Shown: one piece after another, positions 4,670 through 64,000 of the stretch | Layout of the letters: each line of letters opens with the position of its first letter | How positions within the stretch are numbered: position 1 is the stretch's first letter | DNA from: Macrostomum lignano | Lineage: Eukaryota | Length of the DNA: 64,000 bases | Direction of reading: 5' to 3' | NCBI GenBank assembly: GCA_002269645.1 | Contig: NIVC01003555.1 | Span: 27,656 to 91,655 of the forward strand | Made by a program: the position numbers and the translations under genes | The notes under the pieces: generated by a model | Database searches by the model: none | Seen by the model: the letters and a program-made list of their open reading frames with translations, nothing else | What the model was told of the DNA's origin: nothing

Positions 4670-6246
4670 ATGTCATCTTGTCGTCAAAACTATGCACCAG
4701 ACTACCAGAGTGTGAGGTGTCTTTGAACAAGCAGAGCAGATCAATGTTCAGCTTTACACAGCCTATGTCTACACTGGTTTAGCTTGGCATTGCAATCGTT
4801 CAGACATTGCTCTGCCTGGCTTGCACAAATTTTTCCAAATCAGAGCCAATGCAAGTCGTCAACAAGCTAAATGCCTGATGGCCTATCAGACTGTGAGGGG
4901 AGGCCAGTTGATTCTAGCTGATATTGGCAAACCTCCTGCTCCCGTCACAGTCTCCAGCACTGCAGTGGGATTACAGTTGGTGCAGCAGGCATTAGAAATG
5001 GAGAAGACTGTAAATGCTGCTCTGTTGCAGTTGCACTCCATTGGCGATTCTGCTAGTGATGCACATTTTCTGGTGAGAATTATTTTAATGCAATTTATAT
5101 TATTAAATTTTAAATTGCTTTGCTTTATGCCAGCATTGTTAGTCTGGTGTTGGATTATATGTCTGGTGGTTTGATACTTAGTGTAATGCCTAGATAATCA
5201 TTCTGGTGCCTGGATAATTAGTCTGGTGCCTGGATAATCAGTGTAGTGCCTGGATTATTAGTCTGGTACCTGGATAATCAGTCTGGTGCCTGGATAATTA
5301 GTCTGGTGCCTGGATAATTAGTCTGGTGCCTGGATAATCAGTCTGGTGCCTGGATAATTAGTCTGGTGCCTGGATAATCAGTCTGGTGCCTGGATAATTA
5401 GTCTGGTGCCTGGATAATCAGTGTAGTGCCTGGATAATCAGTGTAGTGCCTGGATAATCAGTTTAGCGCCTGGATAATCAATATAGTGCCTGGATAATCA
5501 GTGTAGTGCTTGGATAATTAGTCTGGTGCCTCGATAATCAGTTTAGTGCCTGGATAATCAGTTTAGCGCCTGGATAATCAATATAGTGCCTGCAGATAAT
5601 CAGTGTAGTGCTTGGATAATTAGTCTGGTGCCTCGATAATCAATTTAGTGCCTGGTTAATCAGTCTGGTGCCTGGATAATCAGTGTAGCGCCTGGATAAT
5701 CAATATAGTGCCTGGATAATCAGTCTGGTGCCTGGATAATCAGTGTAGTGCCTGGATAATCAGTGTAGTGCCTGGATAATCAGTCTGGTGCCTGGATAAT
5801 CAGTGTAGTGCCTGGATAATCAGTCTGGTGCCTAAATAATCAATCTCGTTCCAGGATAATTAGTGCCTGGATAATCAATATGGTGCATGGATTAATTATA
5901 TGGTTCCTGGATTATTAAAATGGTGCCTGGATTATTAATGCGGTGCCTGGATAATAGTCTGGTGCCTGGATAATCAGTCTGGTACCTGAAGTATAATTAT
6001 GGAACCTTTATTTTTAGTCAGTGCCTAAGATTTAATACGTCTGGCACATAAAAGAGCCCACTTTCTAAATACAAACTCCAGTTTCTCACAACTCCCCAGG
6101 ACTTCATCGAAGGTGAGTGCCTGGATGCCCAGGCCAGCTGTCTGAAGCGCCTGTCCGACCTGGCCTCCCAGCTGGCCCAGTGCGGCCAGGGTCTTGGCGA
6201 GTTTGCTTTCGATCGCGAGCTGCTGCATGATCAATCTGATTGTTGA
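4670..6246 (+). pseudogene. Ferritin-like gene, 2 exons (4670-5072, 6100-6246), frameshifted near the 5' end
   Basis: Removing an 8-bp and a 5-bp insertion gives MSSCRQNYAPECEVSLNKQINVQLYTAYVY...RGGQLILADIGKP...ALEMEKTVNAALLQLH...DAHFL|DFIEGECLDAQ...GLGEFAFDRELL, co-linear with animal ferritin. Donor GTGAGA at 5073, acceptor CCCCAG ending 6099. As written, the frame from ATG 4670 stops at TGA 4724-4726. Confidence 0.85.
5195..5990. repeat. 20-bp minisatellite (GGATAATCAGTCTGGTGCCT) in the ferritin intron
   Basis: Direct tandem array of roughly 38 variant copies. Confidence 0.95.
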
Positions 6247-38633: not shown

Positions 38634-39213
38634 ACCAGCGCCCTCCCAGTGTTGGAGGTGGCAACCAGTGGACTGAGCTAGCAGTTAAAACAAAACAGCT
38701 TTACTCGCTAGAGATCAATGCTTTTCTTTGCTGAGTTGGCAAGCTCGGCTGAGGGGGTGTGAGTCGTCGAAGAGCGTTTCGGGACGGTACGCACATTGAG
38801 CACAGGGACAATGGCTTCACTTCAGAATGTGAATCGATGCCTTAACGCGGAGGGTCCGACCTGGACGGAGCAGGAGGTGGCGCCACCACTTGCTGCTCAC
38901 AGCCCGGTTTACGAGCCTCAGTGCTACGCTGGGAAACACCTGCTCCAACTCTGCTAGCCACCAGGCCATTGCCCACGAAGTCACCCCAGCGAACTCTCTC
39001 CACCCCCCGCATGCGTTCGCGAGTCGCCACTGGAAGCAGAAGACGCTATACTGCTATAACTATGCTGCCGCCCCCAGTCCGCGAGCTTCTCCGACTTTCC
39101 AACACACGCCCAGTTCGAAAGCTGCTATAGAAAATATCGTAGCAGTTCGCATTTTGTCGTTGAACAATCAAGTACAACTGCAGGCTACTGTTTTGATTTG
39201 CTCAAGCAAGAGA

Positions 39214-42200
39214 ATGCTGCTGAAGGGCAGAGCTGCTGCGGTGAGCAGCTTGTTGCTGCTCGTTTTGCTTCTGGTTGGAACTCGCTGCCAAGCCAGACCA
39301 GTGCGAGGACCAGGTGAGTAGCACCTGATGTAGCAAACAGAGTAACAAATATTGTGCAAAACATCATAGCAACTACTTGATTGCTATGCACTTGAAGGAC
39401 TTCCTTTGAAACCCGCAACTTTACAGAGTCTGAAGAGCACGAGGAACTTTATCCAGAAGAGGAAGAAGAGGAGTTTTTTCCCGGTAAAAAAGGAGGAAGT
39501 GTCGTTTCAGAAGAATGTGAGTATAGTGTTTTGACCGCCCAATAAAAATGAAAACGTGTTTAATAACTGCATTGACAACTGCGTAATGCTTGAATCGCTT
39601 CAGTGCTGAAAAAGCTCCTGGCCGGCCGAGATGAAGTGTCGCGGTCGTCAAAGGACATCCAGAAAAGTAAATCTGTAAAAAAGATTTAGCACATTAAACT
39701 ATTCAATTATTCTACAAGCTTGAAGCACCATTTTCGATCTGCAGGAAGGCGCAAATCCGATGGCAAAAACCCGAAAGTTGTGCCGCCCGCGAGTAAAAAG
39801 CGTAAGCCACAAATTCTGCATGCATTCTGCATTTTCACTGTGAAATTCTTAGTAAAATTTGTTTTGTCTTTCAGTAGAGCGCAAAGTTCACAGCCTACCA
39901 AGGATTCACCCAAGCCGGAAAGTGGGCGGAAGCAGGAAGTCTGCGCCACCGGTGAGGAAAGGTAGGTCAGGAACTTTACCTGCATAATTTGGTTTTGCTC
40001 TTCTTGCCGTAAGACACGTTGGCGGAAAGAGTTCCCTACCAAAGAGTGAGTTTCAGATAACATCAGATAGCAAGCAAACATCAATCCAAATTGGCGGTTT
40101 CAGAGAAGAACCAAAAGAATCGTAGAATCGTTTTGGGAGGCTCCGAGAGCTCCCTGCCGCCTCAGTTCAGAAGTGAGTATCAGCGCCATGACTCACAATG
40201 GCGACATTTCTGACACACTAGCATGAAATTCATCAAGAAGTTTGACTGTTTCAGAGAAGAACAAGAAGAGGATGATTGTAGGCGGCTCTGAGAGCTCCCT
40301 GCCGCCTCAGTTTAGAAGTGAGTATCAGCGCCATGACTCACAATGGCGACATTTCTGACACACTAGCATGCAATTCATCAAGAAGTTTGACTGTTTCAGA
40401 GAAGAACAAGAAGAGGATGATTGTAGGCGGCTCCGAGAGCTCCCTGCCGCCTCAGTTTAGAAGTGAGTATCAGCGCCATGACTCACAATGGCGACATTTC
40501 TGACACACTTTAGCATGAAATTGATCAAGAAGTTTGACTGTTTCAGAGAAGAACAAGAAGAGGATGATTGTAGGCGGCTCCGAGAGCTCCCTGCCGTTTC
40601 AGTTCAGAAGTGAGTATCAGCGCCATGACTCACAATGGCGACATTTCTGACACACTAGCATGAAATTGATCAAGAAGTTTGACTGTTTCAGAGAAGAACA
40701 AGAAGAGGATGATTGTAGGCGCCTCCGAGAGCTCCCTACCGCCTCAGTTCAGAAGTGAGTATCAGCGCCATGACTCACAATGGCGACATTTCTGACACAC
40801 TTTAGCATGAAATTGATCAAGAAGTTTGACTGTTTCAGAGAAGAACAAGAAGAGGATGATTGTAGGCGGCTCCGAGAGCTCCCTGCCGCCTCAGTTTAGA
40901 AGTGAGTATCAGCGCCATGACTCACAATGGCGACATTTCTGACACACTTTAGCATGAAATTGATCAAGAAGTTTGACTGTTTCAGAGAAGAACAAGAAGA
41001 GGATGATTGTAGGCGGCTCCGAGAGCTCCCTGCCGCCTCAGTTCAGAAGTGAGTATCAGCGCCATGACTCACAATGGTGACATTTCTGACACACTAGCAT
41101 GAAATTCATCAAGAAGTTTGACTGTTTCAGAGAAGAACAAGAAGAGGATGATTGTAGGCGCCTCCGAGAGCTCCCTACCGCCTCAGTTCAGAAGTGAGTA
41201 TCAGCGCCATGACTCACAATGGCGACATTTCTGACACACTTTAGCATGAAATTGATCAAGAAGTTTGACTGTTTCAGAGAAGAACAAGAAGAGGATGATT
41301 GTAGGCGCCTCCGAGAGCTCCCTACCGCCTCAGTTCAGAAGTGAGTATCAGCGCCATGACTCACAATGGCGACATTTCTGACACACTAGCATGCAATTCA
41401 TCAAGAAGTTTGACTGTTTCAGAGAAGAACAAGAAGAGGATGATTGTAGGCGGCTCCGAGAGCTCCCTGCCGCCTCAGTTCAGAAGTGAGTATCAGCGCC
41501 ATGACTCACAATGGCGACATTTCTGACACACTTTAGCATGAAATTGATCAAGAAGTTTGACTGTTTCAGAGAAGAACAAGAAGAGGATGATTGTAGGCGG
41601 CTCCGAGAGCTCCCTGCCGCCTCAGTTTAGAAGTGAGTATCAGCGCCATGACTTCTAAGCGTTTAAGAGTTACGCACGTTTTTAGCACACTGGACAGGGA
41701 TTAAGGTAGTAGGCAGTAGCCAGGTGAGTGCGAAAAAAACTGGGAATCGACAAAAAGGACGCCGTAATCCCAGATGATGTCGAAGAAAAAAGGCAATAAA
41801 ATTAGTGAAACAAAATATGAAGCAAGGAGCGCTGATAGAGATTCAGTCGTCGAAGCTTGAGGCAGAAGTTTTGCCTTGACCTTACATCTCGAGACTCTGT
41901 TGTGCTCCAAAAAGTTTTCTTTGGTTTCTTGAACGGTGCATGAAGCGAGTGACTGGGTGAATTGCCATTTTCTGCAATTCATGCAGCAGTAAACCCTTAA
42001 GAGCGTTGAGGACATTTTTATTGATGATGGATCCGTGGTACGTGCGTTTATCTGCTTGAAAACTGGAAAAAGTGATGTATTTTAGCATCAGTCTCACTTT
42101 AAGCAGTCCAAAACAGTAGCCTAAGTTAGTGACTCAAGAAAGGACTCAAGATGGAACTCAGGACTCAAGGAAGGCAAGGCAAGACTCTCTAAGACAATGT

Positions 42201-45200
42201 CGAGAACCCCTGGGAGTGGTGGTAGTTCCACAAATTCAACCTGGATGAGATGTCTGGGGGCTTCTTGTCCACTCGTCCGATCAGTGATTGATTGGCCTTC
42301 GGTCTGGTCCGGAGCTTCACTTCGGGCTCCTTTATGTCGATGAAGTTGACATCCTTTATGATACCATAGCTCGAGAGTCATTATGAATCGATCAGCTGAT
42401 CAATACTGCAGGTTCTGTGTCAGAAGAGGAGCGATCCAGCAAACGCTTCCCTTTGTCCGGATACGCAAAGGCCTCCAAGACTCCCGGGTCCAGAGGTGAC
42501 AAGGACAAAGAGTTTAAAAGTGCGTCATAATTTGTCATACCCTGATAATTATTGTAGGACAGAATTTTCGTAGTTGAAAAAACTCTGAAGAAAAATTCGA
42601 AAAAATCGATAAGCGATTTGGAATCAAAGTGACGGGCACCGGGAGCTCCCCGACCGCCCCAGAATGGAAGTGAGTTGCGGTGGTCAATCTGTCAATCAAA
42701 GAAGACATTTCCAGTATCCTTAGGTCTCCAACTGCTCTGCCTCGTACTCCAGTTGATTTGAGATTCGAGTCGAACATTCGGCAGTTTAACCATTGTTAAC
42801 TTTCCAAAACCGTTGGAAAAGTCTGGCTTGGACTTTAGGAAACAGAAAGTTTTACTGTTTCTTTTAGCGACCCTCGAAAGGAAGGCAAGAATTTATACCG
42901 TGGACGACATAAATACCTGCATAAACGTGGGCTCACAAACACCCAGGGTGCGCAGGGGTCCTCAGACAGCGAAAAATGTGGTGGCCGCTTGCACAATCGA
43001 ATTCAGGGTCCTTAGTCCAAGTCTAAGGTGCTTCGTCTCTTCCAAAACAACCCAAAAAATTAAAATGCATTCAACTTTTCCAAGTGCACCCAGCTTACAC
43101 TGAAACAAATGCAACTAAAAACACTGCTACGCTTTAGAGAAGAACAAGAAGATCTCCAAGGCTCCTCAGGTGGGCGGCTCTGAGAGCTCCCTGCCGCCTC
43201 AGTTTAGAAGTGAGATCCCTTTAATACTGCATCAGTTGTTATGATTTCAAAGCCAATCAAGAGCATCTGTGAACAAATATGAGTCCGTTCATTCACTGCA
43301 GAGAAGCACCGCAAAGCCAAGAAGTCAGTTCCGAAGCCAGGCTCCTCGAAGGCCTCACTACCTCCCAAGAAACCCAAGAAGATTAAGAGTGAGTCTGTTT
43401 CTCCATTTTGCCGATTTTAAACCCTTGAATCAAGCAGTGTCTCCTGCGGTTGCAGAAATCGTCAGGCACCTTGGATTCAAAGCTGCTGAGCGCAAAAGTG
43501 AGTCTAAATTATTCTAATTTTCTTTCGTTTTCCGAAATGATCTCATGTTAGCATGCACAGGCGACGCCCCTTGCGCGTATGCGCTCGCAGAGCAGTCGAG
43601 AGGGGCAGGCAGCAGCAGCCTGAGGGGTCAGCGCAAGCGCCTACAAGTCAGCGATGAGGCAGTCAGTCAGAGCAGTCAGAGTGACAAAGCGGGTCTGGCC
43701 GCTCCACAGTCGCTCGGTCGGCTGGTGCAGCAGGGCCAGGGCCAGAAGGACGGCCTCACCGCGGCCAAGGGCCCGTAGGCAGTCGCCCAGCAGCATTTGA
43801 CGATACCGGCGCAGGGTAGCGCTCACCAGCGCGGGCCATCAGAGCGTTGGTCGACATGCGCTCCAGATAGTGCACGCCAAGCGCGTAACGCAGCAGCGAT
43901 CGGTAGAGGGAATCCAGGGCTCGCGCTCGCATCTGCGTCAGCGGCTCAGCCTCCATGCCGTACAGACGGATCGGCTCTACGACCGCGTGGAACAGGCACA
44001 CCTTCAGGTCGTCTCTGGCAGCTGAAGTGAAGACGTTCATGAAGAAGGGAGCGCGCGTCGCGCCAGGCCTGGTTCCTCCTGTCGGAGACAATGGCACAGG
44101 GTTCAGCACCAAGGCGTCGAGGTACCGGAAGTCCTCGCACGTGGCGGTGCCGTCTCCTTTGGGCAGCGTGAGATTTGGGGCGGTATTTGGGCCCTCGTGC
44201 AGCGCCTCCGTCTTGCGAGCATTCACCAGCAGCCCAAGACGGGCGCCCTCGTCGCCGAGTCTTGCGAGAGTGCGCTGGGCAGCGGCTGGGTCGCGACAGA
44301 GCAGCGCGATGTCGTCAGCATACGCGAGAGCGGGAAGCAAAAGAAATCGAAGCAAAACGAGAGGGCGTCTGGACCCTCGGTGTAGAACCAGTAGCTGTCA
44401 TCCTCGTGGAGGTACTGATGCAGCGCATAAGTCCAAAACCACGAGGAAGAGCAGCAGAACCAGCATGTCGCCCTGAAGGACGCCTGGGCTGATGCCGAAC
44501 TCTTCTTCTGGACCGCCGCCGCTTGACATGACAAAGGCACTGGAGTCAGGATAGAGATCTATCACTGCGTACGCGTAGCAGGTAGGAGATAGGAGCCACG
44601 CGATAGCTCTGTGGTGGATCCGCCCGGGCGGAAGCCATTTTGGAGGCTCAGCAGCAGTGGGTCGAGGCCGGGTTGGAGGCCGTTGCGCAGAATTGCGTTC
44701 AGCAGTTATCTCGGCTGGTGGAGGCGCCTTTCTTTGAGATGGAGACAATATTGGAGGTCCGACATTGCTGAGGAGCTAAGGCGGCCTCGTTGCCTTCAAG
44801 GCTGCAGTGCTTGTTCGGCAGGCTGGTGATGATCGGGGTGAGCTCAGGCAGCTTCAGGACCCTGGGAGGGATGGCGTCCACCCCAGCGGCGGCATCAGCT
44901 CGCATGGTCATCAGTGCTCGGCCAACCTCGCCTGCAGTGATGGGGCCGGTGTCGAAGGCGCCTGGTTGGACTGAAGCGAAGTCTGGGATTGGCAGGAGAG
45001 GCACAGTTGAAGCGGGCGCGCTGTAGTTGGTGGCCAGCCGGGCCTTCCGGTGCTCGGTGGAATCAGCACCGACGATGGTGTCGGGCTTCGGCTTCCTGCC
45101 GGTCAGCTGGTTGATGGCCCTTCTGGCAGCGCTATGGCGGCCGTTGTCAGTGCCGTTTGGGTTTTGCTCACAGCCACTTCGATGAAGACTTCAGTCCGCT

Positions 45201-48200
45201 GGGCATAGATGCGCTGCAGCTCGTCCGTGGCAGCACTGGCCTGGGCGCTGTCATGGCCGTGGAGGGCAGCAGTGCTCTCCTTCCCTTGGAGACGATGAGA
45301 CTGCGGTCCCACAGAGCCTTTGGATGGTTTGCCTGTCTCCGTGGGAGAAGCGCTGCAGCATCCTCGACGGCGTGATGGAAAGACTCGAAAGACTCGTTCA
45401 AAGAAATTTGGAAGCTTTTTGAGGCGCTTTCGCATGGTGCCATTGACAGCCATCAGATCTCTGGCCTGGAAAAAACTGGATAGGAAAGGTGAGTTGGCAT
45501 TGGGGATGCCACAGCTGTTCTTCACCAGGCGGCCGTCGGCTGGAAATTGCGAGTTGAAATCCCCTGCACCAAACTGTCACCGATGTTCTTGAACTGCCAG
45601 GATGGAGATGTTGAGGTCAGCGGCCAGCCTTGTCAGCTCCTGCAGTCTCCATGTCTGACTGAGAGCGCGGGCATTGAAGGTGGCGACCCGAAGCTGGTCT
45701 TGAAGATGCGGCCGACTTGTGTCCTTGTTGGCTCTGCTTGTCACTGATCTCAGCAATGTACAGTGTTGCATTTGACTGAAAACACCAATAATTGTACTCC
45801 TTGAGAATAACAAGAAGATCTCCAAGGCTCCTCAGGTGGGCGGCTCCGTGAGCTGCCTGGCGCCTCAGTTTAGAAGTATAAGATCTGTTTAATACTGCAT
45901 CAGTTATTGTGATTTCCAAGCCAATCAAGAGCATCTGTAAACAAATATGAGTCCGGTCATTCACTGCAGAGAAGAAGCGCAAAGTCAAGAAGGCAGTTCC
46001 GAAGCCAGGCTCCTCGAAGGCCTCACTACCTCCCAAGAAACCCAAGAAGATTAAGAGTGAGTCTGTTTCTCCATTTTGCCGATTTTAAACCCTTGAATCA
46101 AGCAGTGTCTCCTGCGGTTGCAGAAATCGTCAGGCACCTTGGAATCAAAGCTGCTGGGCAAAGTGAGTTTAGAGTATTCTAACTACATGTACCTTCGCTG
46201 TCACCTTCGATCTCGTAGTAATATTTCTACTTTGTAACAGAGAAGGAATATTGATTAAGGTGTTTGACTGTTTCAGAGAATAACAAGAAGATCGCCAAGG
46301 CTCCTCAGGTGATCGTGGGCGGCTCCGAGAGCTCCCTGGCGCCTCAGTTCAGAAGTGAGATCCCTTTATATTATTATATCAATTTTTTATTTCCAAGCCA
46401 ATCAAGAGCATCTGGGAACAAATACGAGTATGAGTCCGGTCATTCACTGCAGAGAAGAACCGCAAAGCCAAGAAGTCAGTTCCGAAGCCAGGCTCCTCGA
46501 ATGCCTCACTACCTCCCAGGAAACCCAAGAAGAATAAAAGTGAGTCTGTTTTCTGTTTTCGTTGGTGTCGACGAGAAGCGACGAGACACCCTATGCAGGT
46601 CCTTTCCAGGGTCCTTCCCTATGCAGGGCGCCCGACATGAGCCTCGAGTGAAGAGGGGGCCTTCTTATAATAAAGTGGCGCCCCTGATGAAAGATTCTGG
46701 CTGTGCGCCTTGGCACAAGTCTGACTGCTTCATCATGTTTATTGCCCCTCGATGCATTTTGACCCAAAGGAGATGTAGCTAGATACTTGAAGTGTTAAGA
46801 AAAGTTCCAGTGCTGTGTTGATACAAAAGGGAATAATAGTAAATACTTGAGCTAGCTCAATGTAATTTGGCTATAACTTCTTCATGAAATTACAGAGCAA
46901 CAAATACTGCTTTCATTTTTGCTGCCTCAACGAACACGGTGCTTTAAGTTGACAAAAACTCTCTCTTTTATACCCACAATCCTCTGGGATTCCAAGGGAG
47001 TGACCTTGGATGGGATTCTCTATGTTTGCATCGGTGTCACGTTAAAAGTTCAGTCTGACGGACAGAGAACCGCGCCGACTAAGCTCGGCCGTCCAAGTGA
47101 CTTTCGGCCTTCTTAATCCCACTAGTGAAAATCGTCATTTTTATCGGTTTTTTATTTTTCAGAAAAGCAAAAGAAGAGGAAAATTTTATTCAGACACGTT
47201 CGCACCGGTGGCGATGAAAGCTCGACTTCAACTGGCTCTGGAAGTGAGTGCATGCCATCTATGCTCGTATCCTCCCACATGCGATCACTCTTTTTCGAAA
47301 ATTTTATTTTTACGAATCGTTCGGTTTTTTAGCACCTCGAAAAGTAAATATTGGGAAGAAGAAAAGAATTCAAAAACACAAGGCCGGCGGAAGTGGCGTC
47401 AAAAAGACCGGTGGAAGTGGTGTCAAAAAGACCAGTGGAAGTGGCGTCAAAAAGGTTGGCGGAAGTGGCGTAAAAAATTCCAGTGGAAGTGGTGCCAAAA
47501 AGGCTGGCGGAAGTACCATCAAAAAGGTTGGCGGAAGTGGCGTCAAAAAGGCCGGCGGAAGTGGTGTCAAAAAGGCTGGCGGAAGTGGCGTCAAAACAGT
47601 TGGCGGAAGTGGCGTCAAAAAGGTTGGCGGAAGTGGCGTCAAAAAGGCCGGCGGAAGTGGTGTCAAAAAGGCTGGCGGAAGTGGCGTCAAAAAGGCCGGC
47701 GGAAGTGGTGTCAAAAAGGCTGGCGGAAGTGGCGTCAAAACAGTTGGCGGAAGTGGCGTCAAAAAGACCAGTGGAAGTGGCGTCAAAAAGGTTGGCGGAA
47801 GTGGCGTCAAAAAGGTTGGCGGAAGTGGCGTCAAAAAGGCCGGCGGAAGTGGTGTCAAAAAGGCTGGCGGAAGTGGCGTCAAAACAGTTGGCGGAAGTGG
47901 CGTCAAAAAGACCAGTGGAAGTGGCGTCAAAAAGGTTGGCGGAAGTGGCGTCAAAAAGGTTGGCGGAAGTGGCGTCAAAAAGGCCGCCGGAAGTGGCGTC
48001 AAAAAGGCCGGCGGAAGTGGCGTCAAAAAGGCCGCCGGAAGTGGCGTCAAAAAGGCCGGCAGAAGTGGCGTCAAAAAGGCCGCCGGAAGTGGCGTCAAAA
48101 AGGCCGGCGGAAGTGCCGTAAAAAATTCCAGTGGAAGTGGCGTCAAAAAGGCCGGCGGAAGTGGCGTCAAAAAGGCCGCCGGAAGTGGCGTTAAACCGGC

Positions 48201-48243
48201 CCCTCTGAAGGGACCCAGCAAGGGAAAGGCGAACCAGCCTTAA
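39214..48243 (+). CDS. Secreted Lys/Gly/Ser-rich repeat protein, paralog A, about 895 aa from 26 exons: 39214-39313, 39427-39516, 39604-39666, 39745-39801, 39875-39961, 40104-40172; ten 63-nt exons starting 40255, 40400, 40547, 40692, 40839, 40986, 41131, 41278, 41423, 41570; then 42412-42519, 43138-43209, 43302-43388, 43456-43497, 45970-46056, 46124-46162, 46277-46354, 46453-46539, 47163-47243, 47333-48243
   Basis: Signal peptide MLLKGRAAAVSSLLLLVLLLVGTRCQA. Every listed internal exon is AG/GT-bounded, phase 1-1, a multiple of 3 and stop-free. Summed length is 2688 nt (896 codons) ending on TAA. Region 41650-42400 and possible exon 47049-47096 are unresolved. Confidence 0.75.
40173..41652 (+). 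repeat. Tandem exon+intron array A: 10 x 145-147 bp
   Basis: Unit = TTTGACTGTTTCAG | 63-nt exon | GTGAGTATCAGCGCCATGACTCACAATGGCG... Confidence 0.95.
43546..45744 (-). mobile_element. Decayed non-LTR retrotransposon (APE + RT, RTE-like) in an intron of paralog A
   Basis: Fragmented frames: LRVATFNARALS...LAVQEHR (APE), GVLQGDML (RT motif 4), LAYADDIALL (YADD), LLVNARKTE, FRYL, LYGMEA. Candidate 8-bp TSD TGATCTCA at 43538-43545 and 45745-45752. Confidence 0.88.
47380..48195 (+). repeat. Coding 24-bp repeat, 34 x KK(A/V/T)(G/S)GSGV, in the terminal exon of paralog A
   Basis: No frame-breaking indels across 34 units; in frame with the spliced model. Confidence 0.85.
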
Positions 48244-49881
48244 GGTAGGTAGGCCGAAGGCATTACTTCCAAGGGTGTTGAACGCATTGTAAGCTGAGCA
48301 ATGGCAAGCTGATCCAATTCCTAATCTTCTCTTTCAGGTGCCGACTGTCGAAGTCAGAATTGCATTCTGCGAGGCTGATGATCCGAAACATGACCAGACA
48401 AAATATATTATTTTTTCTCGGTCCGGTCAAAGTGAACAAACATTTCCTTTCTCCCCGACAATTCACATCTAGTCGCTTATATTTTGAAAGTGCTGTCATC
48501 CTAACTACCATTACGATGTTGAGCTGAAGAAAATAAAAGCCAGAATTTAATAATGAATTGTTTTGATTCCTAAACAGGCTGTGGTTATTCAAGCAAGTTT
48601 CAAAGAACCTAAATGAATTATTTGCGTTATTTTAACTCTGGAAAATACTGAACGATGAAATTTCATAAATGGCAAATATTTGGTGAATCAATACTATGAC
48701 CGCCAGTCAGTCAACAGTGGTTCGTATTATTCTAACAAAGCAGCCCCCCCCCCCTCAGGCGCGTTCTCATTAGTCCCGAAGAAGTACACAAAGCACTTTA
48801 ATGCAGAGTATTTCAGAGCACAAAAACGCTCGAAAACAAACAAATTTAATTATTCTAACAAAATCTAAATTATCATTTGTTCAGAAAGAATTAGTTTTTT
48901 GTTATTAATAACAAAGCGTTAAATTAAAAAATTGAATTTATTAAATCATAAACTAGATTTACATATTTCTATGTTGAATACAATCCTCGATTACTTCGGA
49001 AAGACAGCTTCTGGTTGTGAGTTCGTATAGTTCCTTCAAAGTTTAAATTAACAAAGTTGTGTAAATACTGCTAGAAATTGTGTAACTTGTGCTTCTTAAC
49101 GTTAAAAATATGATAAACATTTCACCAGAAGGAAAATTAATATTTCTCTACATGCGCTTTTTGACTCCCCAGATTTCACTTTAGCCGTGTGGAACCCGCC
49201 TGAGATGCTGTCTTTGCCTCATCATCACTCGCTTGACTGGCTGGCAAAGTAGGACTTCAGTGTTGTCGTTGGAAGGTTCTGACATTTTTAAACTCAGAAC
49301 AAAAACTGAAGCAGCTAGAAGCAACTTTGGCGTCATCGTGACAGCAGAAGTGACAACGTATATAAAAAGCGATGGTTTATCCTTTGTCTCAACATTCGTG
49401 TGAGCATTGTGTAAATTGCATCAGAATATCCCAGTGCGTGACAACGATTGACTGTCACGCAATCGTTGTCACGTGCTGCGACCGCTGATTCTTTGCATTG
49501 TTATGCTGCTTGACGATTGTATTGTTCTGCATAAAAATGTGAATAATGATCGTCAAATTGCTAGACAATGGAAAACGCGCACATTAAGCGCAAAAACAAC
49601 GCAGTAGTCAGAGACTGTTCATCAGAAGTTGCTCATTAAAACTGAAACGTGCAATCCTTGAAGTGACAGTTCTCGAATAAGCGAACTGCGCATTCCGAAT
49701 GCATCCGACCTGCAGATTAATGGACATTGTAAAAATTCACAGTTTCTATATAGCCATTAGTATAGCCACTAATTTACTTACAATGTTGACATATTATACT
49801 TACCATGCTTCACCCGCATCTCCTGTGTCACCTCCACTGAAGCATACATGTAGGTCGCACGGGTCGGTCAGTCGTCGACAC

Positions 49882-52800
49882 TAGTTGTTTGACAAGACAA
49901 ATACAAATGTAGCTTTTACTCGCACTACCCGCTTTTCTGATTCTTGCAAGACGCAAACGAAATCAGCACTCATCACAGTGTTGTCTATGGTCAATCTAAG
50001 ACACATCTCACTCGTCTATGGGTAAAATAACTTGAAGCGTGATAAAAAAGTGTGGAATAATGACCGCTTCCAGCACGCTGAAATAATGGCCGCCAGACTA
50101 CGCTATGCCGAAATAATGGCCTCTGTGTGTCTTATAGACAATGGCGTTGCGTCGTATATGACAATCTACCATTGCTAAACACTTTTAGCAGTGTGACACC
50201 CATGAATTTGATGTTTAGCTGGCCACAGACATTGAAGTATTCAGACCAATTGTATCAGATTCGCCATAGACATTAAAGTGTTCAGATCAATTATCAGATT
50301 CACTCTCGCTCGTAGATTCCTACATCCATGCTCTAGCTGTTGTTATTTGTAGCTGGTACTTTATACTTTATCATCCGATAAACGTTGGATAACAAAAAAC
50401 ATGGCACCAATTTTACCTGTTATAAATTGGAAACGTCTGCCCGTGGACGCACTTGATGGAGTCAAGACTGACGAGCATCATGTGCATTACTGACCAAAAG
50501 ACCGAACGGACTGTTTGATGATACCTCTTAAGGAAAAGAGATCCTGCTGTTTGTCAAGCATCGACTGCTGTAAGCGCTGCCTTAGAGCGACCAATCGGGG
50601 AAGGTCTGTAAAAACTGTAGCCTTGAACAGCAGAGCAGTAGAAAAGAAAACAAGTGAGCAGACTCGGCGAAGTGACTCCGAGTCAAGACGTGCATCTTTC
50701 AGCAGTTAGGATAAACTGCAATCTTATTATTTTTAGGATGTACCTCCAGTGTTTTTCTCATAACTTTTGGATTTTTCAGCTATATCAGATAAATGGTATA
50801 TATTTCCCATTTATTTTGTTGTGTAGCGGGCAAAGGCTCGTGTGCCTTTGACCTTAGACAACACAATAAATCGGAAATATGGTATGTATCTCCCACTATA
50901 TGGCTAAAGAACGTAAAACTATAATTAAAAACGTACTTTAATATTTTTAAACTTAAATCAAGTCAAAGCTGTAGTCTATGGCTAAGCATTTAAACAAGGT
51001 ACAGGCTGAAACCACATAATGACTAAGAAAATAAAATAAGTAAGAGCAAGCGAAGAAGCGAATAATTATAAATATATAGATTTTCACGACATGACTAGCG
51101 AACGGTTTGAAAGTCTGACGGACGTTGAAGTAGACGCCTTGATTCAAAGTACTCTTCCGCCAAACACAATAAGAAAGTGTGAGTGGATGATCGCTACATT
51201 TCGTGAATGGCATCAGTTCAAGAAGAACCAGTGGGCTACATCAGGCGGACCATCTTTAGTGGTATTAAAGGAGATCGAGGAATTCACTAAGAACGATTTT
51301 AACTACTTGTTGAAGATGTTTATTCTAGAGGTGAGAACGAAATGGAATGAAAGATATTAGGCCGGCACATTAACCGGCAGAAGACGGATGGCACGATTTC
51401 GTGCCATAAAGTAATCATAGTTATTGACGGAACCGAATCTTAGTGTCTAGGGCAATCGTAGATTGCAGAATTTAATACCCCCGTTGCCGACTGACATGGC
51501 TCAAAAACGTGCCACGTCCGTTTTAGTTGGAAAGCTGCTTATTTTCCTATAGGTTAGGTGGCACTGTCTATGGCAATCATCACAGATCAAGAATAGGACC
51601 AGGACCAAATGCACACCTGCGTATATTAAAAACGAATATTAGTATTTGAAGTAGTTAGTACATTTGTATCTTATGCGTAGTATAGTATAACACGAACGTA
51701 GATCATGCTTTCTGTATTGATAACACAAACTAACGCAAAAAGCATTAGTTTTTAGGAAGACTTTAGGAAGGCTCCACGTCGCCTAGCATCACCGGTATCC
51801 TCAACCAATATTTTAATAGCCTGTCTCAAGAACTGCAGAAAAGTCTTGCTGCCACCTGCCTGTTGGTAGACAATCCAAGCGTTGCGAACGAGCAGCAGGA
51901 TCAGGTGAAACCCGAGTTTGTGGAACCACCGGATGCTTTTTCGATTGGCCAAGTACGGGTGTAGAGCGGAATCCATGTGGTCGACGCCACCCATGCTGTT
52001 AGAGTACGAGAGCACGCTAGTCGGTTTGGTGACGATCTGAACGCCGCCGCCACGACGAGTGCGCTGAACTTGCCTACATTCGGCCGATCCAGCGGTGTCC
52101 AATACGAAAACAGTCTTGACGCCACTCTGTTTCCTGTCAACAAACTTGCAGGCAAGCACATTTCCAGAGCGTGCAATGGCGGAAGAAGTTGGCTGCAGAT
52201 TTACAGCCTGCAGCAGGTTTGGGATGCCGCGGTTTTTGCGCACTGTGTCAGTGAGAAGAACATTCCGTTGCAGCAGCCACGTAGCAAGTCTGTGCGAAGT
52301 GAACCAACTGTCTGTGAAAATATGGTAGCCTAGGTAAAGCAAATTGCGGCACAACTCAGCCACAACTCTCTCACTCATGGACAAATTTTGACAGCCCAGT
52401 CCATCACCGAACAATTGGTTGGCTTCAGTTGATGTATGGATTTCAAAATTCCACAGGTAGGTCATGTCGGACTCACAAAGGCAGTACATCTTGATTCCGT
52501 ACTTACTGCTCTTCGTTGGGATGTACTGCTTGAACAACAGTCTTCCCTTGTACAGCACGAGACTTTCGTCAATCGAGAGCCGCTGACGAGGCATAGTTGT
52601 TGCTGCACAGCTGCTTAGCCTGTTGCAGAAAAGGCTGCGTCTTAGCCAAGGGACCCCCGTGCAGAGCCTCAGTGCAATCGTAAAAGCGAAAACAGGACAA
52701 GATCTGCTTGAACCTGTCTCTAGGAAGAGAACAAGGCTCAGCAAGAAATGCACAGTGATAAGCCGGATCTTGCGACCAATAGCTCGATATTTCAGGCTTC

Positions 52801-54411
52801 TTGTCCAGTCCCATCAGCAAAACAATTCCGATCAATTTTCTTACTTCATTAACCGTGCAGTCCTTCCAGTTCAGCACAAAATTTGGGACTGCTCCACCGT
52901 CAAAGTTATCCTCATAGGTCTTCCAAACCTTTGCGTTTGTCCAGTTCTTGATGTTCTCCATCAACCCGTCCGTCAAATACGAGGGCTGAGCAATAAGTTT
53001 CCGGATGTGCATAGTTGAGAGGCGGCTGACAAAATCTGACAAAATCAGATTCTGAAATCTGAAACTATTGCTCAGCCCTCGTACAGCTTGATAAAATCAC
53101 TCTCGTTTCCGTCGGCGATCTCAGGAAGCTGCAAATCGGGCCTGACTCCTGGTACTCCGAGGAACTCAGGCAGAGGTGCTGGCCTGGCATCAGCGCCATC
53201 TTCAACAAGATGCCACTGTTCTCCTACAAGTGACTCATCCTGCCCTTCTTCTTGGTCACTATGGGGATTTTCAACTTTGGATCCGTCAATTGACTCATCA
53301 TCAGCAGTGAACCAGCTCACTCCGAGTCTCCGTCAAAGTCTAACGCCATGTAATGATTCTCAGGAGCGAAATGCTTGGTGCTTTGGGTAGACAGAGGATC
53401 CAATTTTATAATAAGACTGTTTCTGTATTTCTGAAGCAGGTCCTTGGCAGAACTATTATGAGCACGACAGTGATTTCAATAAAAATCTATGGCCGAAAAT
53501 AGTGCCCTTTCCATATTTCCCTGTAAGGTTTTCTCATGAATGAAAGACATGCAGCCATAGCATTTGGTCCCCAGCCATAGACAAATTATCTTTTGGTTAA
53601 GCGGCTTTGTTACATACGGGTATACTTGTGGAGCTAGCTGCCGTCTGGAACGGGGGTAGAAATTCTGACACTCATGCACTTGGCACGAAATCGTGCCAGC
53701 CAGCCGTCGGCAAAGGGTGTGACGCATTTTTTGGTTCGTCGCGTAGAGGTTAAAGGACTTTTTTCAATGCTCCAATATCACATGCGAAACGTGGTCGGCA
53801 ACAATGGTGCTTATGGACTGATGTCGAGTTCACCGAAAGCAGAAAGGCTTTAGACTCAGCAATGAAATTCGCAGAAGGTCACGACGGAGTCAGTGGCTGA
53901 AACTAGGGTGCAGCGAGATGCGGATATTCCTACTAGAAAGAAGATGCGGATTAATGTCAACGGTGAGACCAACAGTGTAGTTATTAGTTTCGAGTAATTA
54001 TCCTATAATAACATTTAATATCATTCTTCAAATCAATAGTAACTTAACATTAACTTTTTTGTTTTGTAACTTTTTTGTAAGTAGACACATTCGGGACATG
54101 CCCCCAAATTTTTGGCGCGCGCTAAAATAAAAAGAAGTGACCCGGCGCTCGCCAGACAATCGTCGCTGATTATTTATCCATTATTCCACGCTTTTGCGGC
54201 CATTATTACACGCTTTTGTCACTGTCATTATTCCACGCTTTTATCATGCTTCAATTGGCTGTTTCAAGAGTTGTTTTACCCATAGACCACTGAGATGTGT
54301 CTCAGTTTGACCATAGACACACTGTGATGAGTGCTGATTTCGCTTGCGTCTTGCAAGAAATCAGAAAAGCGAATAGAGCGAGAAAAAGCTTTTTGACTTG
54401 TCAAACAACTA
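49882..54411 (+). mobile_element. TIR-bounded element carrying a decayed Crypton/DUF3504-type tyrosine-recombinase ORF (fragments 51091-51373 and 53754-about 53960)
   Basis: About 190-bp imperfect inverted repeats starting TAGTTGTTTGACAAG at 49882 and ending CTTGTCAAACAACTA at 54411. ORF fragments RFESLTDVEVDALIQSTLPPNTIRKCEWMIATFREW...FNYLLKMFILEVRTK and WTDVEFTESRKALDSAMK match the N-terminal pattern of DUF3504/Crypton proteins. Confidence 0.65.
51374..53749 (-). mobile_element. piggyBac (PGBD4-like) transposon, frameshifted
   Basis: TTAA at 51370-51373 and 53750-53753; inverted subterminal TGGCACGATTTCGTGCCA at 51389 and 53681. Transposase motifs RDRF, SIDES, KYGIK, FTDSWFTS, GTVRKNR-like (DTVRKNRG), MGGVD, RWFHKL across three broken frames. 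Confidence 0.92.
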
Positions 54412-59195: not shown

Positions 59196-59245
59196 ACTAT
59201 ACTGCTATAAATATACTGCCGCCCCAGTCCGCGAGCTTCTCCGAT
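59196..59245 (+). promoter_or_regulatory. Putative core promoter of paralog B (TATAAATA at 59206), conserved with paralog A at about 39045-39095
   Basis: Shared block CTATACTGCTATAA(A/C)TAT(A/G)CTGCCGCCCC..AGTCCGCGAGCTTCTCCGA about 150 bp upstream of both ATGs. Confidence 0.55.
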
Positions 59246-59357: not shown

Positions 59358-62300
59358 ATGCCGCTGAAGGGCAGAGCAGCTGCAGTGAACAGCTTGTTGC
59401 TGCTCGTTTTGCTTCTGGTTGGCACTCGCTGCCAAGCCAGACCAGTTCCAGGATCAGGTGAGTATAAGCAGGCTTGGCTTGACTGACTACTCTATGTAGC
59501 AAACAGAGTAACTAATATTGTGCTTGCATAGCAACACTTGATTACCGTACACTCGAAGGACCTCCTTTGAAACCCGCAACATTACAGAGTCTGATGATGA
59601 CCACGAGGAACTTTTTCCAGAAGAGGAAGAAGAGGAAGAAGAAGAAGAGCCTTCTACAGGTGAAGAAGGTGACGAGAGGCATGGAGGAGGAAGTGTCGAA
59701 GTGAGTAACGGGTTTTCCACTGCTTAGCTCGTACTATTAAAGATGAAACTGGGTACTCTGTCCTAATAACAGCGGAATAATTGAAACGCTTCAGTTCTGC
59801 AACAGCTCAAAACCAGCCGAGATGAAACCTCAAAAGACTTCCTAAAAGGTAAATGCAACAAATATGTCACAAAAAACAACCATTCAACACGCTCGAAGCG
59901 CCATTTATAGGCTGAAAGAAAAGCGCAAAACTACATTCAAAACGCAAAGGTTATGTAAGGCCACTAATCTAATGGGACATGGCGACATTTCTGACACACT
60001 TTAGCATGAAATTGATCAAGAAGTTTGACTGTTTCAGAGAAGAACAAGAAGAGGATGATTGTAGGCGGCTCCGAGAGCTCCCTGCCGCCTCAGTTTAGAA
60101 GTGAGTATCAGCGGCACGACTCACAATGGCGACATTTCTGACACACTTTAGCATGAAATTTATCAAGAAGTTTGACTGTTTCAGAGAAGAACAAGAAGAG
60201 GATGATTGTAGGCGGCTCCGAGAGCTCCCTGCCGCCTCAGTTCAGAAGTAAGTATCAGCGCCATGACTCACAATGGCGACATTTCTGACACACTTTAGCA
60301 TGAAATTGATCAAGAAGTTTGACTGTTTCAGAGAAGAACAAGAGGATGATTGTAGGCGGCTCCGAGAGCTCCCTAACGCCTCAGTTTAGAAGTGAGTATC
60401 AGCGCCATGACTCACAATGGCGACATTTCTGACACACTTTAGCATGAAATTGATCAACAAGTTTGACTGTTTCAGAGAAGAACAAGAAGAGGATGATTGT
60501 AGGCGGCTCCGAGAGCTCCCTGCCGCCTCAGTTTAGAAGTGAGTATCAGCGCCATGACTCACAATGGCGACATTTCTGACACACTTTAGCATGAAATTGA
60601 TCAACAAGTTTGACTGTTTCAGAGAAGAACAAGAAGAGGATGATTGTAGGCGGCTCCGAGAGCTCCCTGCCGCCTCAGTTTAGAAGTGAGTATCAGCGCC
60701 ATGACTCACAATGGCGACATTTCTGACACACTTTAGCATGAAATTGATCAAGAAGTTTGACTGTTTCAGAGAAGAACAAGAAGAGGATGATTGTAGGCGG
60801 CTCCGAGAGCTCCCTGCCGCCTCAGTTTAGAAGTGAGTATCAGCGCCACGACTCACAATGGCGACATTTCTGACACACTTTAGCATGCAATTGTTCAAGA
60901 AGTTTGACTGTTTCAGAGAAGAACAAGAAGAGGATGATTGTAGGCGGCTCCGAGAGCTCCCTGCCGCCTCAGTTCAGAAGTGAGTATCAGCGCCATGACT
61001 CACAATGGCGACATTTCTGACACACTTTAGCATGAAATTGATCAAGAAGTTTGACTGTTTCAGAGAAGAACAAGAAGAGGATGATTGTAGGCGGCTCCGA
61101 GAGCTCCCTGCCGCCTCAGTTCAGAAGTGAGTATCAGCGCCATGACTCACAATGGCGACATTTCTGACACACTTTAGCATGAATTGTTCAAGAAGTTTGA
61201 CTGTTTCAGAGAAGAACAAGAAGAGGATGATTGTAGGCGACTCCGAGAGCTCCCTGCCGCCTCAGTTCAGAAGTGAGTATCAGCGCCATGACTCACAATG
61301 GCGACATTTCTGACACACTTTAGCATGCAATTGATCAAGAAGTTTGACTGTTTCAGAGAAGAACAAGAAGAGGATGATTGTAGGCGGCTCCGAGAGCTCC
61401 CTGCCGCCTCAGTTTAGAAGTGAGTATCAGCGCCATGACTCACAATGGCGACATTTCTGACACACTTTAGCATGAAATTGATCAAGAAGTTTGACTGTTT
61501 CAGAGAAGAACAAGAAGAGGATGATTGTAGGCGGCTCCGAGAGCTCCCTACCGCCTCAGTTCAGAAGTGAGTATCAGCGCCATGACTCACAATGGCGACA
61601 TTTCTGACACACTTTAGCATGAAATTGATCAAGAAGTTTGACTGTTTCAGAGAAGAACAAGAAGAGGATGATTGTAGGCGGCTCCGAGAGCTCCCTGCCG
61701 CCTCAGTTCAGAAGTGAGTATCAGCGCCATGACTCACAATGGCGACATTTCTGACACACTTTAGCATGAAATTGATCAACAAGTTTGACTGTTTCAGAGA
61801 AGAATAAGAAAAGGATGATTGTAGGCGGCTCCGAGAGCTCCCTGCCGCCTCAGTTTAGAAGTGAGTATCAGCGCCACGACTCACAATGGCGACATTTCTG
61901 ACACACTTTAGCATGCAATTGTTCAAGAAGTTTGACTGTTTCAGAGAAGAACAAGAAGAGGATGATTGTAGGCGACTCCGAGAGCTCCCTGCCGCCTCAG
62001 TTCAGAAGTGAGTATCAGCGCCATGACTCACAATGGCGACATTTCTGACACACTTTAGCATGCAATTGATCAAGAAGTTTGACTGTTTCAGAGAAGAACA
62101 AGAAGAGGATGATTGTAGGCGGCTCCGAGAGCTCCCTGCCGCCTCAGTTTAGAAGTGAGTATCAGCGCCATGACTCACAATGGCGACATTTCTGACACAC
62201 TTTAGCATGAATTTATCAAGAAGTTTGACTGTTTCAGAGAAGAACAAGAAGAGGATGATTGTAGGCGGCTCCGAGAGCTCCCTACCGCCTCAGTTCAGAA

Positions 62301-64000
62301 GTGAGTATCAGCGCCATGACTCACAATGGCGACATTTCTGACACACTTTAGCATGAAATTGATCAAGAAGTTTGACTGTTTCAGAGAAGAACAAGAAGAG
62401 GATGATTGTAGGCGGCTCCGAGAGCTCCCTACCGCCTCAGTTCAGAAGTGAGTATCAGCGCCATGACTCACAATGGCGACATTTCTGACACACTTTAGCA
62501 TGAAATTGATCAAGAAGTTTGACTGTTTCAGAGAAGAACAAGAAGAGGATGATTGTAGGCGGCTCCGAGAGCTCCCTACCGCCTCAGTTTAGAAGTGAGT
62601 ATCAGCGCCATGACTCACAATGGCGACATTTCTGACACACTTTAGCATGAAATTGATCAAGAAGTTTGACTGTTTCAGAGAAGAACAAGAAGAGGATGAT
62701 TGTAGGCGCTCCGAGAGCTCCCTGCCGCCTCAGTTTAGAAGTGAGTATCAGCGCCATGACTCACAATGGCGACATTTCTGACACACTTTAGCATGAATTG
62801 ATCAAGAAGTTTGACTGTTTCAGAGAAGAACAAGAAAAGGATGATTGTAGGCGGCTCCGAGAGCTCCCTACCGCCTCAGTTCAGAAGTGAGTATCAGAGC
62901 CATGACTCACAATGGCGACATTTCTGACACACTTTAGCATGAAATTGATCAAGAAGTTTGACTGTTTCAGAGAAGAACAAGAAAGGATGATTGTAGGCGG
63001 CTCCGAGAGCTCCCTACCGCCTCAGTTTAGAAGTGAGTATCAGCGCCATGACTCACAATGGCGACATTTCTGACACACTTTAGCATGAAATTGATTAAGA
63101 AGTTTGACTGTTTCAGAGAAGAACAAGAAGAGGATGATTGTAGGCGGCTCCGAGAGCTCCCTGCCGCCTCAGTTTAGAAGTGAGTATCAGCGCACGACTC
63201 ACAATGGCGACATTTCTGACACACTTTAGCATGAATTTATCAAGAAGTTTGACTGTTTCAGAGAAGAACAAGAAGAGGATGATTGTAGGCGGCTCCGAGA
63301 GCTCCCTGCCGCCTCAGTTCAGAAGTGAAGTATCAGCGCCATGACTCACAATGGCGACATTTCTGACACACTTTAGCATGAAATTGATCAAGAAGTTTGA
63401 CTGTTTCAGAGAAGAACAAGAGGATGATTGTAGGCGGCTCCGAGAGCTCCCTAACGCCTCAGTTTAGAAGTGAGTATCAGCGCCATGACTCTCACAATGG
63501 CGACATTTCTGACACACTTTAGCATGAAATTGATCAACAAGTTTGACTGTTTCAGAGAAGAACAAGAAGAGGATGATTGTAGGCGGCTCCGAGAGCTCCC
63601 TGCCGCCTCAGTTTAGAAGTGAGTATCAGCGCCATGACTCACAATGGCGACATTTCTGACACAATAGCATGCAATTCATCAACAAGTTTGACTGTTTCAG
63701 AGAAGAACAAGAAGAGGATGATTGTAGGCGCTCGAGAGCTCCCTACCGCCTCAGTTTAGAAGTGAGTATCAGCGCCATGACTCACAATGGCGACATTTCT
63801 GACACACTTTAGCATGCAATTCATCAACAAGTTTGACTGTTTCAGAGAAGAACAAGAAGAGGATGATTGTAGGCGGCTCCGAGAGCTCCCTGCCGCCTCA
63901 GTTTAGAAGTGAGTATCAGCGCCATGACTCACAATGGCGACATTTCTGACACACTAGCATGCAATTCATCAACAAGTTTGACTGTTTCAGAGAAGAACAA
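59358..64000 (+). CDS. Secreted repeat protein, paralog B (5' part, runs off window): exons 59358-59457, 59588-59668 or -59700, 59795-59848, then at least 27 repeat exons starting 60038
   Basis: MPLKGRAAAVNSLLLLVLLLVGTRCQARPVPGS is nearly identical to the paralog A leader; acidic exon 2 and short exon 3 are homologous to A; same 63-nt repeat exon. The exon 2 donor phase is ambiguous and three repeat exons carry frameshifts. Confidence 0.65.
59978..64000 (+). repeat. Tandem exon+intron array B: 27 complete + 1 partial units of about 147 bp
   Basis: Exon starts counted at 60038, 60185, 60332, 60476 ... 63846, 63991. Confidence 0.97.

Follow-up and report, generated by a model that had tools for sequence, protein, structure and literature searches.

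A 147 bp satellite of Macrostomum lignano as a probable coding array of exon–intron units

In a 64 000 nt stretch of the genome of the flatworm Macrostomum lignano (GenBank assembly GCA_002269645.1, contig NIVC01003555.1, positions 27 656 to 91 655 of the forward strand; here called the window), a 147 bp satellite occurs as two arrays that are probably true coding exon–intron sequence. The arrays are likely to be runs of cassette exons in two tandemly duplicated plus-strand genes, gene 1 (~39.05–48.5 kb) and gene 2 (from ~59.2 kb and running off the window), that would encode a secreted, disordered and strongly basic repeat protein. For gene 1 we consider this reading right in its core, and for the array in gene 2 we consider it plausible. 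It had been predicted from the DNA letters alone that the satellite is a tandem series of complete exon+intron units (the original prediction), and the core of this is supported by the arrays themselves, by an acceptor, exon and donor in every unit, by an 859-codon open reading frame (ORF) in gene 1 and by exon junctions in UniProt proteins.

The 147 bp unit and its two arrays

Tandem Repeats Finder (TRF) placed array 2 at 59979–64000 (147 bp period, 27.5 copies, 96 % matches, score 7471) and array 1, with the same 147 bp unit, at 40139–41653 (10.4 copies). Both arrays were split into units and the 36 complete units were aligned. In each unit, the 3′ end of the intron, GTTTGACTGTTTCAG (TTTCAG), precedes a 63 nt exon, which is followed by GTGAGT and the remainder of the 84 nt intron. 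An acceptor, an exon segment of 60–63 nt and a donor were found in all 37 units of the two arrays, and no variation was seen in the final 17 nt of the intron across the 36 aligned units. The donor is GTAAGT instead of GTGAGT in one unit (60126), and in another (63204) it is GTGAAGT, with an inserted A at ~63325. Hence, the anatomy described in the original prediction (acceptor, 63 nt exon, GTGAGT donor and a single GTAAGT) stands, but the GTGAAGT donor and three frameshifted exons had been overlooked.

Read in phase 1, the exon encodes (K)KNKKRMIVGGSESSLPPQFR, as had been proposed, and this is the reading used in the UniProt models. The predicted unit-to-unit exon junction is CAGTTYAGAA/AGAAGAACAAG (a slash marks the junction here and below). 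A fixed TGA closes frame 0 of the exon and only TTT units have a stop in the third frame, in agreement with the stops reported earlier, and all six unspliced frames of the 147 bp unit contain stops. The five synonymous variant sites (AAC/T, AAG/A, TCC/T, CTG/A and TTC/T) and the four amino acid variants (G>A, G>D, P>T and P>F) listed in the original prediction are all present in the alignment. The exon is phase 1-1 and 63 or 60 nt long in 34 of the 37 units, and 61–62 nt long in three distal units of array 2. All ten exons of array 1 are intact at 63 nt, while those of array 2 are 63 nt in 22 of 27 units, 60 nt in two and frameshifted in three.

The two units with a clean 3 nt deletion (60332 and 63410) were correctly identified, but they record a single event, because the same linked variants, CTA and ACG, are common to both and they lie within a four-unit block that was copied 21 units apart. 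Mosaic haplotypes and multi-unit block copies, the latter seen within array 2, point to continued unequal exchange or conversion. Array 1 alternates between units of 145 bp and 147 bp via a TT indel in the intron, and the 145 bp form is found in array 2 only among the last units (63644 and 63934). The polymorphisms common to arrays 1 and 2, namely CTG/CTA, TTC/TTT, A/C at intron column 30 and G/C at column 35, are either older than the gene duplication or result from exchange between the two. We note that 147 bp is also the length of the DNA in a nucleosome core particle, but nothing points beyond coincidence and array 1 also has 145 bp units.

Array 1 lies within a complete gene

The features of gene 1 are as follows.

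39054–39064, plus strand: TATA-like box (CTATAACTATG)
39214–39313, plus strand: exon 1, with the ATG and signal peptide MLLKGRAAAVSSLLLLVLLLVGTRCQA
39427–39516, 39604–39666, 39745–39801 and 39875–39961, plus strand: exons 2 to 5, all phase 1-1, exact match to UniProt A0A1I8JIW0
40104–40172, plus strand: founder exon KNQKNRRIVLGGSESSLPPQFR, 69 nt, with the first partial copy of array 1 as its 3′ half
40139–41653, plus strand: array 1, ten exon+intron units of 145 or 147 bp, exons 7 to 16 of gene 1
43138–43497, plus strand: diverged single-copy relatives, namely exon A (43138–43209, KNKKISKAPQVGGSESSLPPQFR), exon B (43302–43388) and exon C (43456–43497)
45806–45875, plus strand: decayed copy of exon A, acceptor CAG lost, donor GTATAA, private non-synonymous changes (VGGSVSCLAPQFR)
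45970–46539, plus strand: second exon set, namely B′ (45970–46056), C′ (46124–46162), A″ (46277–46354) and B″ (46453–46539)
47163–47243, plus strand: exon D (KQKKRKILFRHVRTGGDESSTSTGSG), 81 nt, distantly related to the array exon
47333–48243, plus strand: last long exon, with TAA at 48241–48243
48338–48379, plus strand: alternative terminal exon (ADCRSQNCILRG, then stop), used by UniProt models A0A1I8ITX3 and A0A1I8JLA8

Joining 25 AG/GT-bounded exons, all phase 1-1, gives an ORF of 2580 nt and 859 codons from ATG to TAA, and all ten exons of array 1 are in frame within it. The internal exons are 39–90 nt long, every one a multiple of 3, and the introns are mostly 67–142 nt (82–84 nt inside the array). 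The short phase-1/phase-1 exons are variants of one motif, a K-rich spacer followed by (I/V)VGGSESSLPPQFR. A 24 bp minisatellite (47380–48195, 34 copies), across which all three plus-strand frames are open, makes up the bulk of the last coding exon, where it reads (KAGGSGVK)n. The UniProt models A0A1I8ITX3 and A0A1I8JLA8 contain this repeat and appear to splice out of it at AA/GTGGCG into the exon at 48338. An AATAAA signal is found at 48532, downstream of the terminal exons. Lys, Gly and Ser account for 22, 16 and 13 % of the mature protein, which has a pI of about 11.7, and each array repeat carries a charge of about +5. The signal peptides of gene 1 (MLLKGRAAAVSSLLLLVLLLVGTRCQA) and gene 2 (MPLKGRAAAVNSLLLLVLLLVGTRCQA), of classical type, were called by eye, and in both genes the next exon is acidic. 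One intron of gene 1 (43500–45800), between the two copies of the A-B-C block, holds a retroelement fragment with an RVT_1 match at 43756–44355 on the minus strand.

Annotated proteins contain the first array exon

When the conceptual gene 1 protein was used in database searches, M. lignano UniProt fragments were the sole matches. A0A1I8JIW0, read from its Met, is an exact 176 aa prefix of the gene 1 model. It ends ...LGGSESSLPPQFR/KKNKKRMIVGGSESSLPPQFR, and its junction ...RRIVLGGSESSLPPQFR/KKNKKRMIVGGSESSLPPQFR (...SLPPQFR/KKNKKRMIVGG...) corresponds to a splice from the founder exon into exon 7, the first of array 1. Over 127 aa, A0A1I8ITX3 matches the gene 1 model exactly across four further downstream junctions. 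In A0A1I8JK32, exon 5 is joined directly to an array-type exon (VRK/EKNKKRM), so that the founder exon is skipped in this annotated isoform. Two further M. lignano fragments are from paralogues or alleles with the structure of gene 1. The open 5′ ends of the UniProt models, which translate 5′ UTR, suggest that the models rest on transcripts.

All of the N-terminal UniProt models end after one array exon, consistent with the earlier view that repeat masking hides the coding region; the 15 % of the M. lignano genome that consists of simple and tandem repeats was masked with TRF before analysis (PMC5730564). A proteome search had been proposed as a check; M. lignano models do contain the first array exon, and no protein with two or more was found. 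As the splice signals of the later units equal those of the first unit, which are used in the annotated models, the spliceosome may be expected to treat all units alike and to splice in all of them. Any pairing of a donor and an acceptor inside the array would stay in frame.

These findings bear on the simplest alternative, that the arrays are an ordinary non-coding satellite in which the splice-like motifs and the open frame are coincidental. Such an explanation would suit a genome with 15 % tandem repeats (PMC5730564) and a window with dozens of minisatellites. However, both arrays are in the same orientation, directly after the signal-peptide exons of paralogous genes, and diverged single-copy relatives of the exon have splice sites of their own. 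A full ORF runs through array 1, and annotated proteins that match it contain an array exon, and with these the non-coding explanation is effectively refuted.

Single-copy relatives of the array exon and the origin of the unit

Diverged copies of the array exon were located by a peptide search of the window, and further short lysine-rich exons follow each of them. The relatives at 40104, 43138, 46277 and 47163 are 69, 72, 78 and 81 nt long, i.e. they differ by multiples of 3. The motif GGSESSL(P/A)PQFR is kept in the first three, and the most distant copy, at 47163, reads GGDESS. In three of these four functional relatives, the last ~40 nt of the exon are nearly identical while the introns cannot be aligned. 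Private non-synonymous changes are found in the copy at 45806, the one relative that is without its splice sites. Judged on these comparisons, the older single-copy relatives appear to be better evidence for coding constraint than counts made within the arrays.

The relatives also indicate how the unit may have arisen. The unit intron matches, in its 5′ part, the sequence downstream of the founder exon and, in its 3′ part (ATTGAT.AAG..GTTTGACTGTTTCAG), the sequence that precedes exon A″, a 78 nt exon at 46277 with an acceptor, GTTTGACTGTTTCAG, identical to that of the array. The intron thus looks composite in origin. Because its two parts match the flanks of different exons, the unit could have been born by unequal exchange between two neighbouring related exons, and amplification would have come next, with one exon and its composite 84 nt intron multiplied head-to-tail. 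As each unit has its own acceptor, symmetric 63 nt exon and donor, subsequent gain or loss of units by unequal exchange would preserve the frame and alter only the number of 21-residue repeats. Array copy number would then be expected to vary between individuals.

Gene 2 and the larger array

The features of gene 2 within the window are as follows.

59205–59215, plus strand: TATA-like box (CTATAAATATA); homology to gene 1 starts abruptly just upstream, at ~59197
59358–59457, plus strand: exon 1, with the ATG and signal peptide MPLKGRAAAVNSLLLLVLLLVGTRCQA, phase-1 end, donor GTGAGT
59588–59659, plus strand: exon 2, acidic (...EEEEEEEEEEPST), 72 nt with the proximal donor ACAG/GTGAAG, the presumed choice
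59795–59848, plus strand: exon 3 (LQQLKTSRDETSKDFLK), 54 nt, phase 1-1, donor GTAAAT
59979–64000, plus strand: array 2, 27 complete 147 bp units and a partial unit that runs off the window end, with exons from 60038 and every ~147 bp
62679–63761, plus strand: stretch of array 2 with the three frameshifted exons and the GTGAAGT donor

An alignment showed that the 5′ regions of genes 1 and 2 are paralogous from the TATA box onward. The indels that separate them are 3, 12, 18 and 9 nt in the exons, versus 1, 3, 3, 22, 4, 1, 1, 4 and 2 nt in the introns and UTR, a contrast which is a coding signature. With the proximal exon 2 donor, and only with it, gene 2 reads from the signal peptide through the acidic exon and exon 3 into the array, where 18 exons are intact up to the first frameshift.

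Evidence against a coding array, and the possibility of decay

Several observations weigh against the coding explanation. If the distal donor at 59700, the homologue of the donor used in gene 1, is chosen for exon 2 of gene 2, the exon is 113 nt long and out of phase. As the sequence is given, unit 20 brings the gene 2 ORF to a stop. Array 2 includes one disrupted donor and three exons with a frameshift; exon 62679–62740 is 62 nt (GGCGGCTCC>GGCGCTCC), exon 62971–63032 is also 62 nt (AAGAAGAGG>AAGAAAGG) and exon 63701–63761 is 61 nt. It had been stated that indels of 1–2 nt are common in the intron part, but these three exons (62679, 62971 and 63701) carry deletions of 1–2 nt as well. The gene 2 product was not found in the protein database searches, and among 5.8 billion clusters no protein with two or more array exons was found.

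Comparison of the exon and intron parts of the 36 aligned units points the same way. Substitutions affect nine of the 63 exon bp and ~12 of the 84 intron bp, and four or five indel events in 63 exon bp compare with five or six in 84 intron bp; the density is equal in both cases. Equal spectra in exon and intron were the outcome that the original prediction had named as its refutation. The five synonymous sites compared with four or five non-synonymous events give P ~0.03–0.1 depending on the transition bias, which is marginal. Thus, the selection argument of the original prediction fails, and neither the exon/intron densities nor the synonymous fraction detected exon-specific constraint inside the arrays, in tests that were underpowered or negative. 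The common variants, CTG/CTA and TTC/TTT, are synonymous and every amino acid variant is rare, which fits purifying selection, with small numbers.

Such observations could be explained if the unit derives from a real exon and intron but array 2, and perhaps most units in the two arrays, are now neutral. Gene 2 would then be a pseudogene, or the array would act as a single long intron whose units are mostly skipped, and the repeat number of the protein would not depend on it. The equal densities, the three frameshifted exons and damaged donor, the phase of exon 2 with its distal donor, the lack of an annotated gene 2 product and the lack of a database protein with more than one array exon are all as expected for a decaying or silent array. 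We regard this as unlikely. Against it, array 1 has ten of ten exons intact in a complete ORF, and the annotated models splice in the first array exon, with identical splice signals carried by the later units. Moreover, at 96 % identity the arrays are too young for selection to show in the counts, and the indels have the pattern of long-read consensus error, as they are changes in the length of base runs in the last 2.8 kb of the window.

The distribution of the indels is informative here. Every single-base indel in the arrays shortens or lengthens a homopolymer run. Such runs make up just 37 % of the unit bases, and eight run hits would occur by chance with P ~4e-4. All are in array-2 units from 61152 onward; array 1 and the first eight units of array 2 are free of them. 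From 61152 on, indels in array 2 are about as frequent as substitutions. Because they are run-length changes only and are clustered in distal array 2, we take the distal frameshifts to be probable long-read consensus errors rather than signs of decay, and natural slippage in a decaying array may be the alternative source.

Possible nature of the product

If the arrays are coding exons, as we favour, the product may be a gland-secreted polycationic structural or coating protein, a suggestion made with low confidence. No credible Pfam domain was found in the gene 1 protein. Literature searches turned up neither a matching Macrostomum satellite nor a match to the protein among adhesive or seminal-fluid proteins. 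The sequence IVGG, which resembles a trypsin-type activation site, raised the possibility of a serine protease, but this was rejected as there is no Pfam protease domain and the motif is in a disordered Lys-rich repeat.

An exhaustive phmmer search, with one of the M. lignano fragments from a paralogue or allele as query, recovered M. lignano paralogues and, beyond these, only a protein of Symbiodinium natans with the short motif in common. This protein (CAE7229251.1) includes three to four tandem M(V/S)(I/V)GGD(E/D)SSLPPEYRHG repeats, strikingly similar to the flatworm MIVGGSESSLPPQFR (phmmer E 4.4e-6). The likeness could be a shared short linear motif, convergence or chance.

One specific proposal compatible with a coding array is a polyprotein precursor. 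Convertase cleavage at ..QFR-KK-N-KKR-M.. would free many copies of the ~14-residue MIVGGSESSLPPQF. The layout fits, in that near-identical units, 10 in gene 1 and at least 27 in gene 2, come after the signal peptide and the acidic exon, with KKR and RKK at the borders of each unit, and processing itself is a prediction. We take this architecture to resemble that of multi-copy neuropeptide or antimicrobial-peptide precursors. However, the repeat does not include a Gly amidation signal, and lysine is abundant all along the other exons and the (KAGGSGVK)n tail, which do not resemble an alternation of spacer and peptide. Apart from the short motif match, no homologue was found outside Macrostomum. 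A precursor of this type is, in our judgement, quite unlikely.

A second proposal is a calpastatin-like, multi-headed protease inhibitor, in which VGGSESSLPPQFR would be a version of calpastatin subdomain B (LGxxxxTIPPxYR). Against a cut-off of 22 bits, Pfam PF00748 reaches 24.9 bits with gene 1 and 59.3 bits with the ten-unit array, the ungapped spacing of the motif matches that in chains 3df0_C and 3bow_C, and the S. natans protein with MVIGGDESSLPPEYRH repeats matches both the query and the same region of the profile. However, nine shuffled 21-mers, each repeated ten times, gave spurious Pfam matches to unrelated families that were equally strong (E 1e-7 to 8e-17), so the PF00748 match does not exceed the null expectation for a tandem repeat. 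Only profile positions ~70–121 are matched, there are no A or C subdomains and phmmer found nothing among PDB sequences. In addition, calpains are cytosolic, but the protein has an N-terminal signal peptide. A calpastatin-like role is very improbable.

A bolder version of the coding explanation is that the arrays act as a fast length dial. Copy number would differ among individuals and paralogues (10 versus at least 27 units), all units would be spliced in or stochastically skipped in frame, and the product would be a charge-tunable gland secretion or a polyprotein that releases MIVGGSESSLPPQF in dozens of copies. This is unlikely. If it were true, the unit would be the most compact known case in which a satellite monomer is a complete splice unit, and part of the 15 % tandem-repeat fraction of the genome would be hidden coding sequence.

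Genomic surroundings and significance

A large cadherin gene occupies 16190–26000 on the plus strand, with long exons, several Cadherin domains (domain ORFs at 16–23 kb) and FAT4/CELSR-like matches. Its introns are filled with minisatellites, including GAGAGTGAGA in 92 copies at 19608–20535 and a 23 bp repeat at 21855–22234. On the minus strand, a single ORF of 356 aa at 31101–32171 encodes EGF and calcium-binding EGF repeats and probably belongs, as an exon, to a gene for a Notch-ligand-like or similar extracellular protein. Between genes 1 and 2, also on the minus strand, is a piggyBac-type transposase (DDE_Tnp_1_7, 51752–53042) in two overlapping ORFs, and so probably frameshifted. At 9523–11335 (plus strand), leucine-rich-repeat ORFs flank a 21 bp minisatellite (10316–10944, 29 copies) that is open in several frames and may be inside or next to coding sequence.

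The window is exceptionally dense in minisatellites of 16–27 bp with 10–100 copies each, for example at 5141, 13709, 35847, 37543 and 56903, and long (GACA)138 and (ATCT)71 tracts are also present. This density fits the 15 % tandem-repeat content reported for M. lignano (PMC5730564).

As the protein models stop after the first array exon, the proteome lacks at least nine repeat exons of gene 1 and 26 of gene 2. Gene 1 itself also ends in a coding minisatellite of 24 bp, and further minisatellites in genomes of this type may likewise be exons. The arrays provide a very compact example of symmetric exons with short introns, amplified like satellite DNA, that lengthen a repeat protein, and they parallel spider silk in an unrelated phylum. 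The concept itself is already known.

Comparison with known systems

Within M. lignano, the adhesive protein Mlig-ap1 is several thousand residues long, with Lys/Arg-rich positive repeats and EGF and other cysteine-rich domains (PMC6410801). The gene 1 protein is likewise secreted with very positively charged repetitive regions, but it is without EGF or cysteine-rich domains and no sequence link was found. A shared function would be speculation.

Tandem whole-exon units also set protein length in the human LPA gene, where the kringle IV-2 exon repeat is variable in copy number, and in the titin PEVK exons and TCOF1, with one repeat per exon. As in the arrays, symmetric phases keep the frame. 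However, the LPA units are of kilobase size, and those of titin and TCOF1 are not homogenized or satellite-like, whereas one exon plus one intron amounts to just 147 bp here.

The micro-exon genes (MEGs) of schistosomes have exons of 3–81 bp and introns of up to 5 kb (PMC4350168, PMC10526429). They too are flatworm genes for secreted products, in which a signal-peptide exon is followed by very small symmetrical exons (here 39–90 bp) that make up nearly all of the coding region, and exon skipping keeps the frame, as seen in the one annotated M. lignano isoform that skips the founder exon. In contrast, MEG introns are long, MEG exons are not tandem identical copies and Macrostomum is free-living. 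No MEG was among the database matches of the gene 1 protein, and no direct comparison with MEG sequences was made.

The closest parallel is with the spidroin genes. Those for flagelliform silk and Argiope MaSp2 have iterated, homogenized introns, with an average identity of 97.6 % for the MaSp2 introns, and introns that delineate repeat units also occur in several other proteins (PMC9779670). As in the spidroin genes, a repeat protein is specified by tandem, near-identical exon+intron units, and the product is secreted (and structural in the case of spidroins). The introns are as homogeneous as the exons, with M. lignano units ~96 % identical, and unequal crossing-over is the proposed mechanism of homogenization and expansion. 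The array of gene 1 is likewise inside a complete gene, while for gene 2 only the 5′ end is within the window. The two systems differ in scale, as the M. lignano unit is 147 bp with a 63 nt exon for 21 residues whereas silk ensemble repeats measure hundreds of bp. Their sequences are unrelated, the M. lignano arrays are in a flatworm, and splicing of the units in series is here predicted from the genome sequence. The arrays are thus closest in kind to the iterated exon–intron organization of the spidroin genes, of which they are an unusually compact instance and not a new category.

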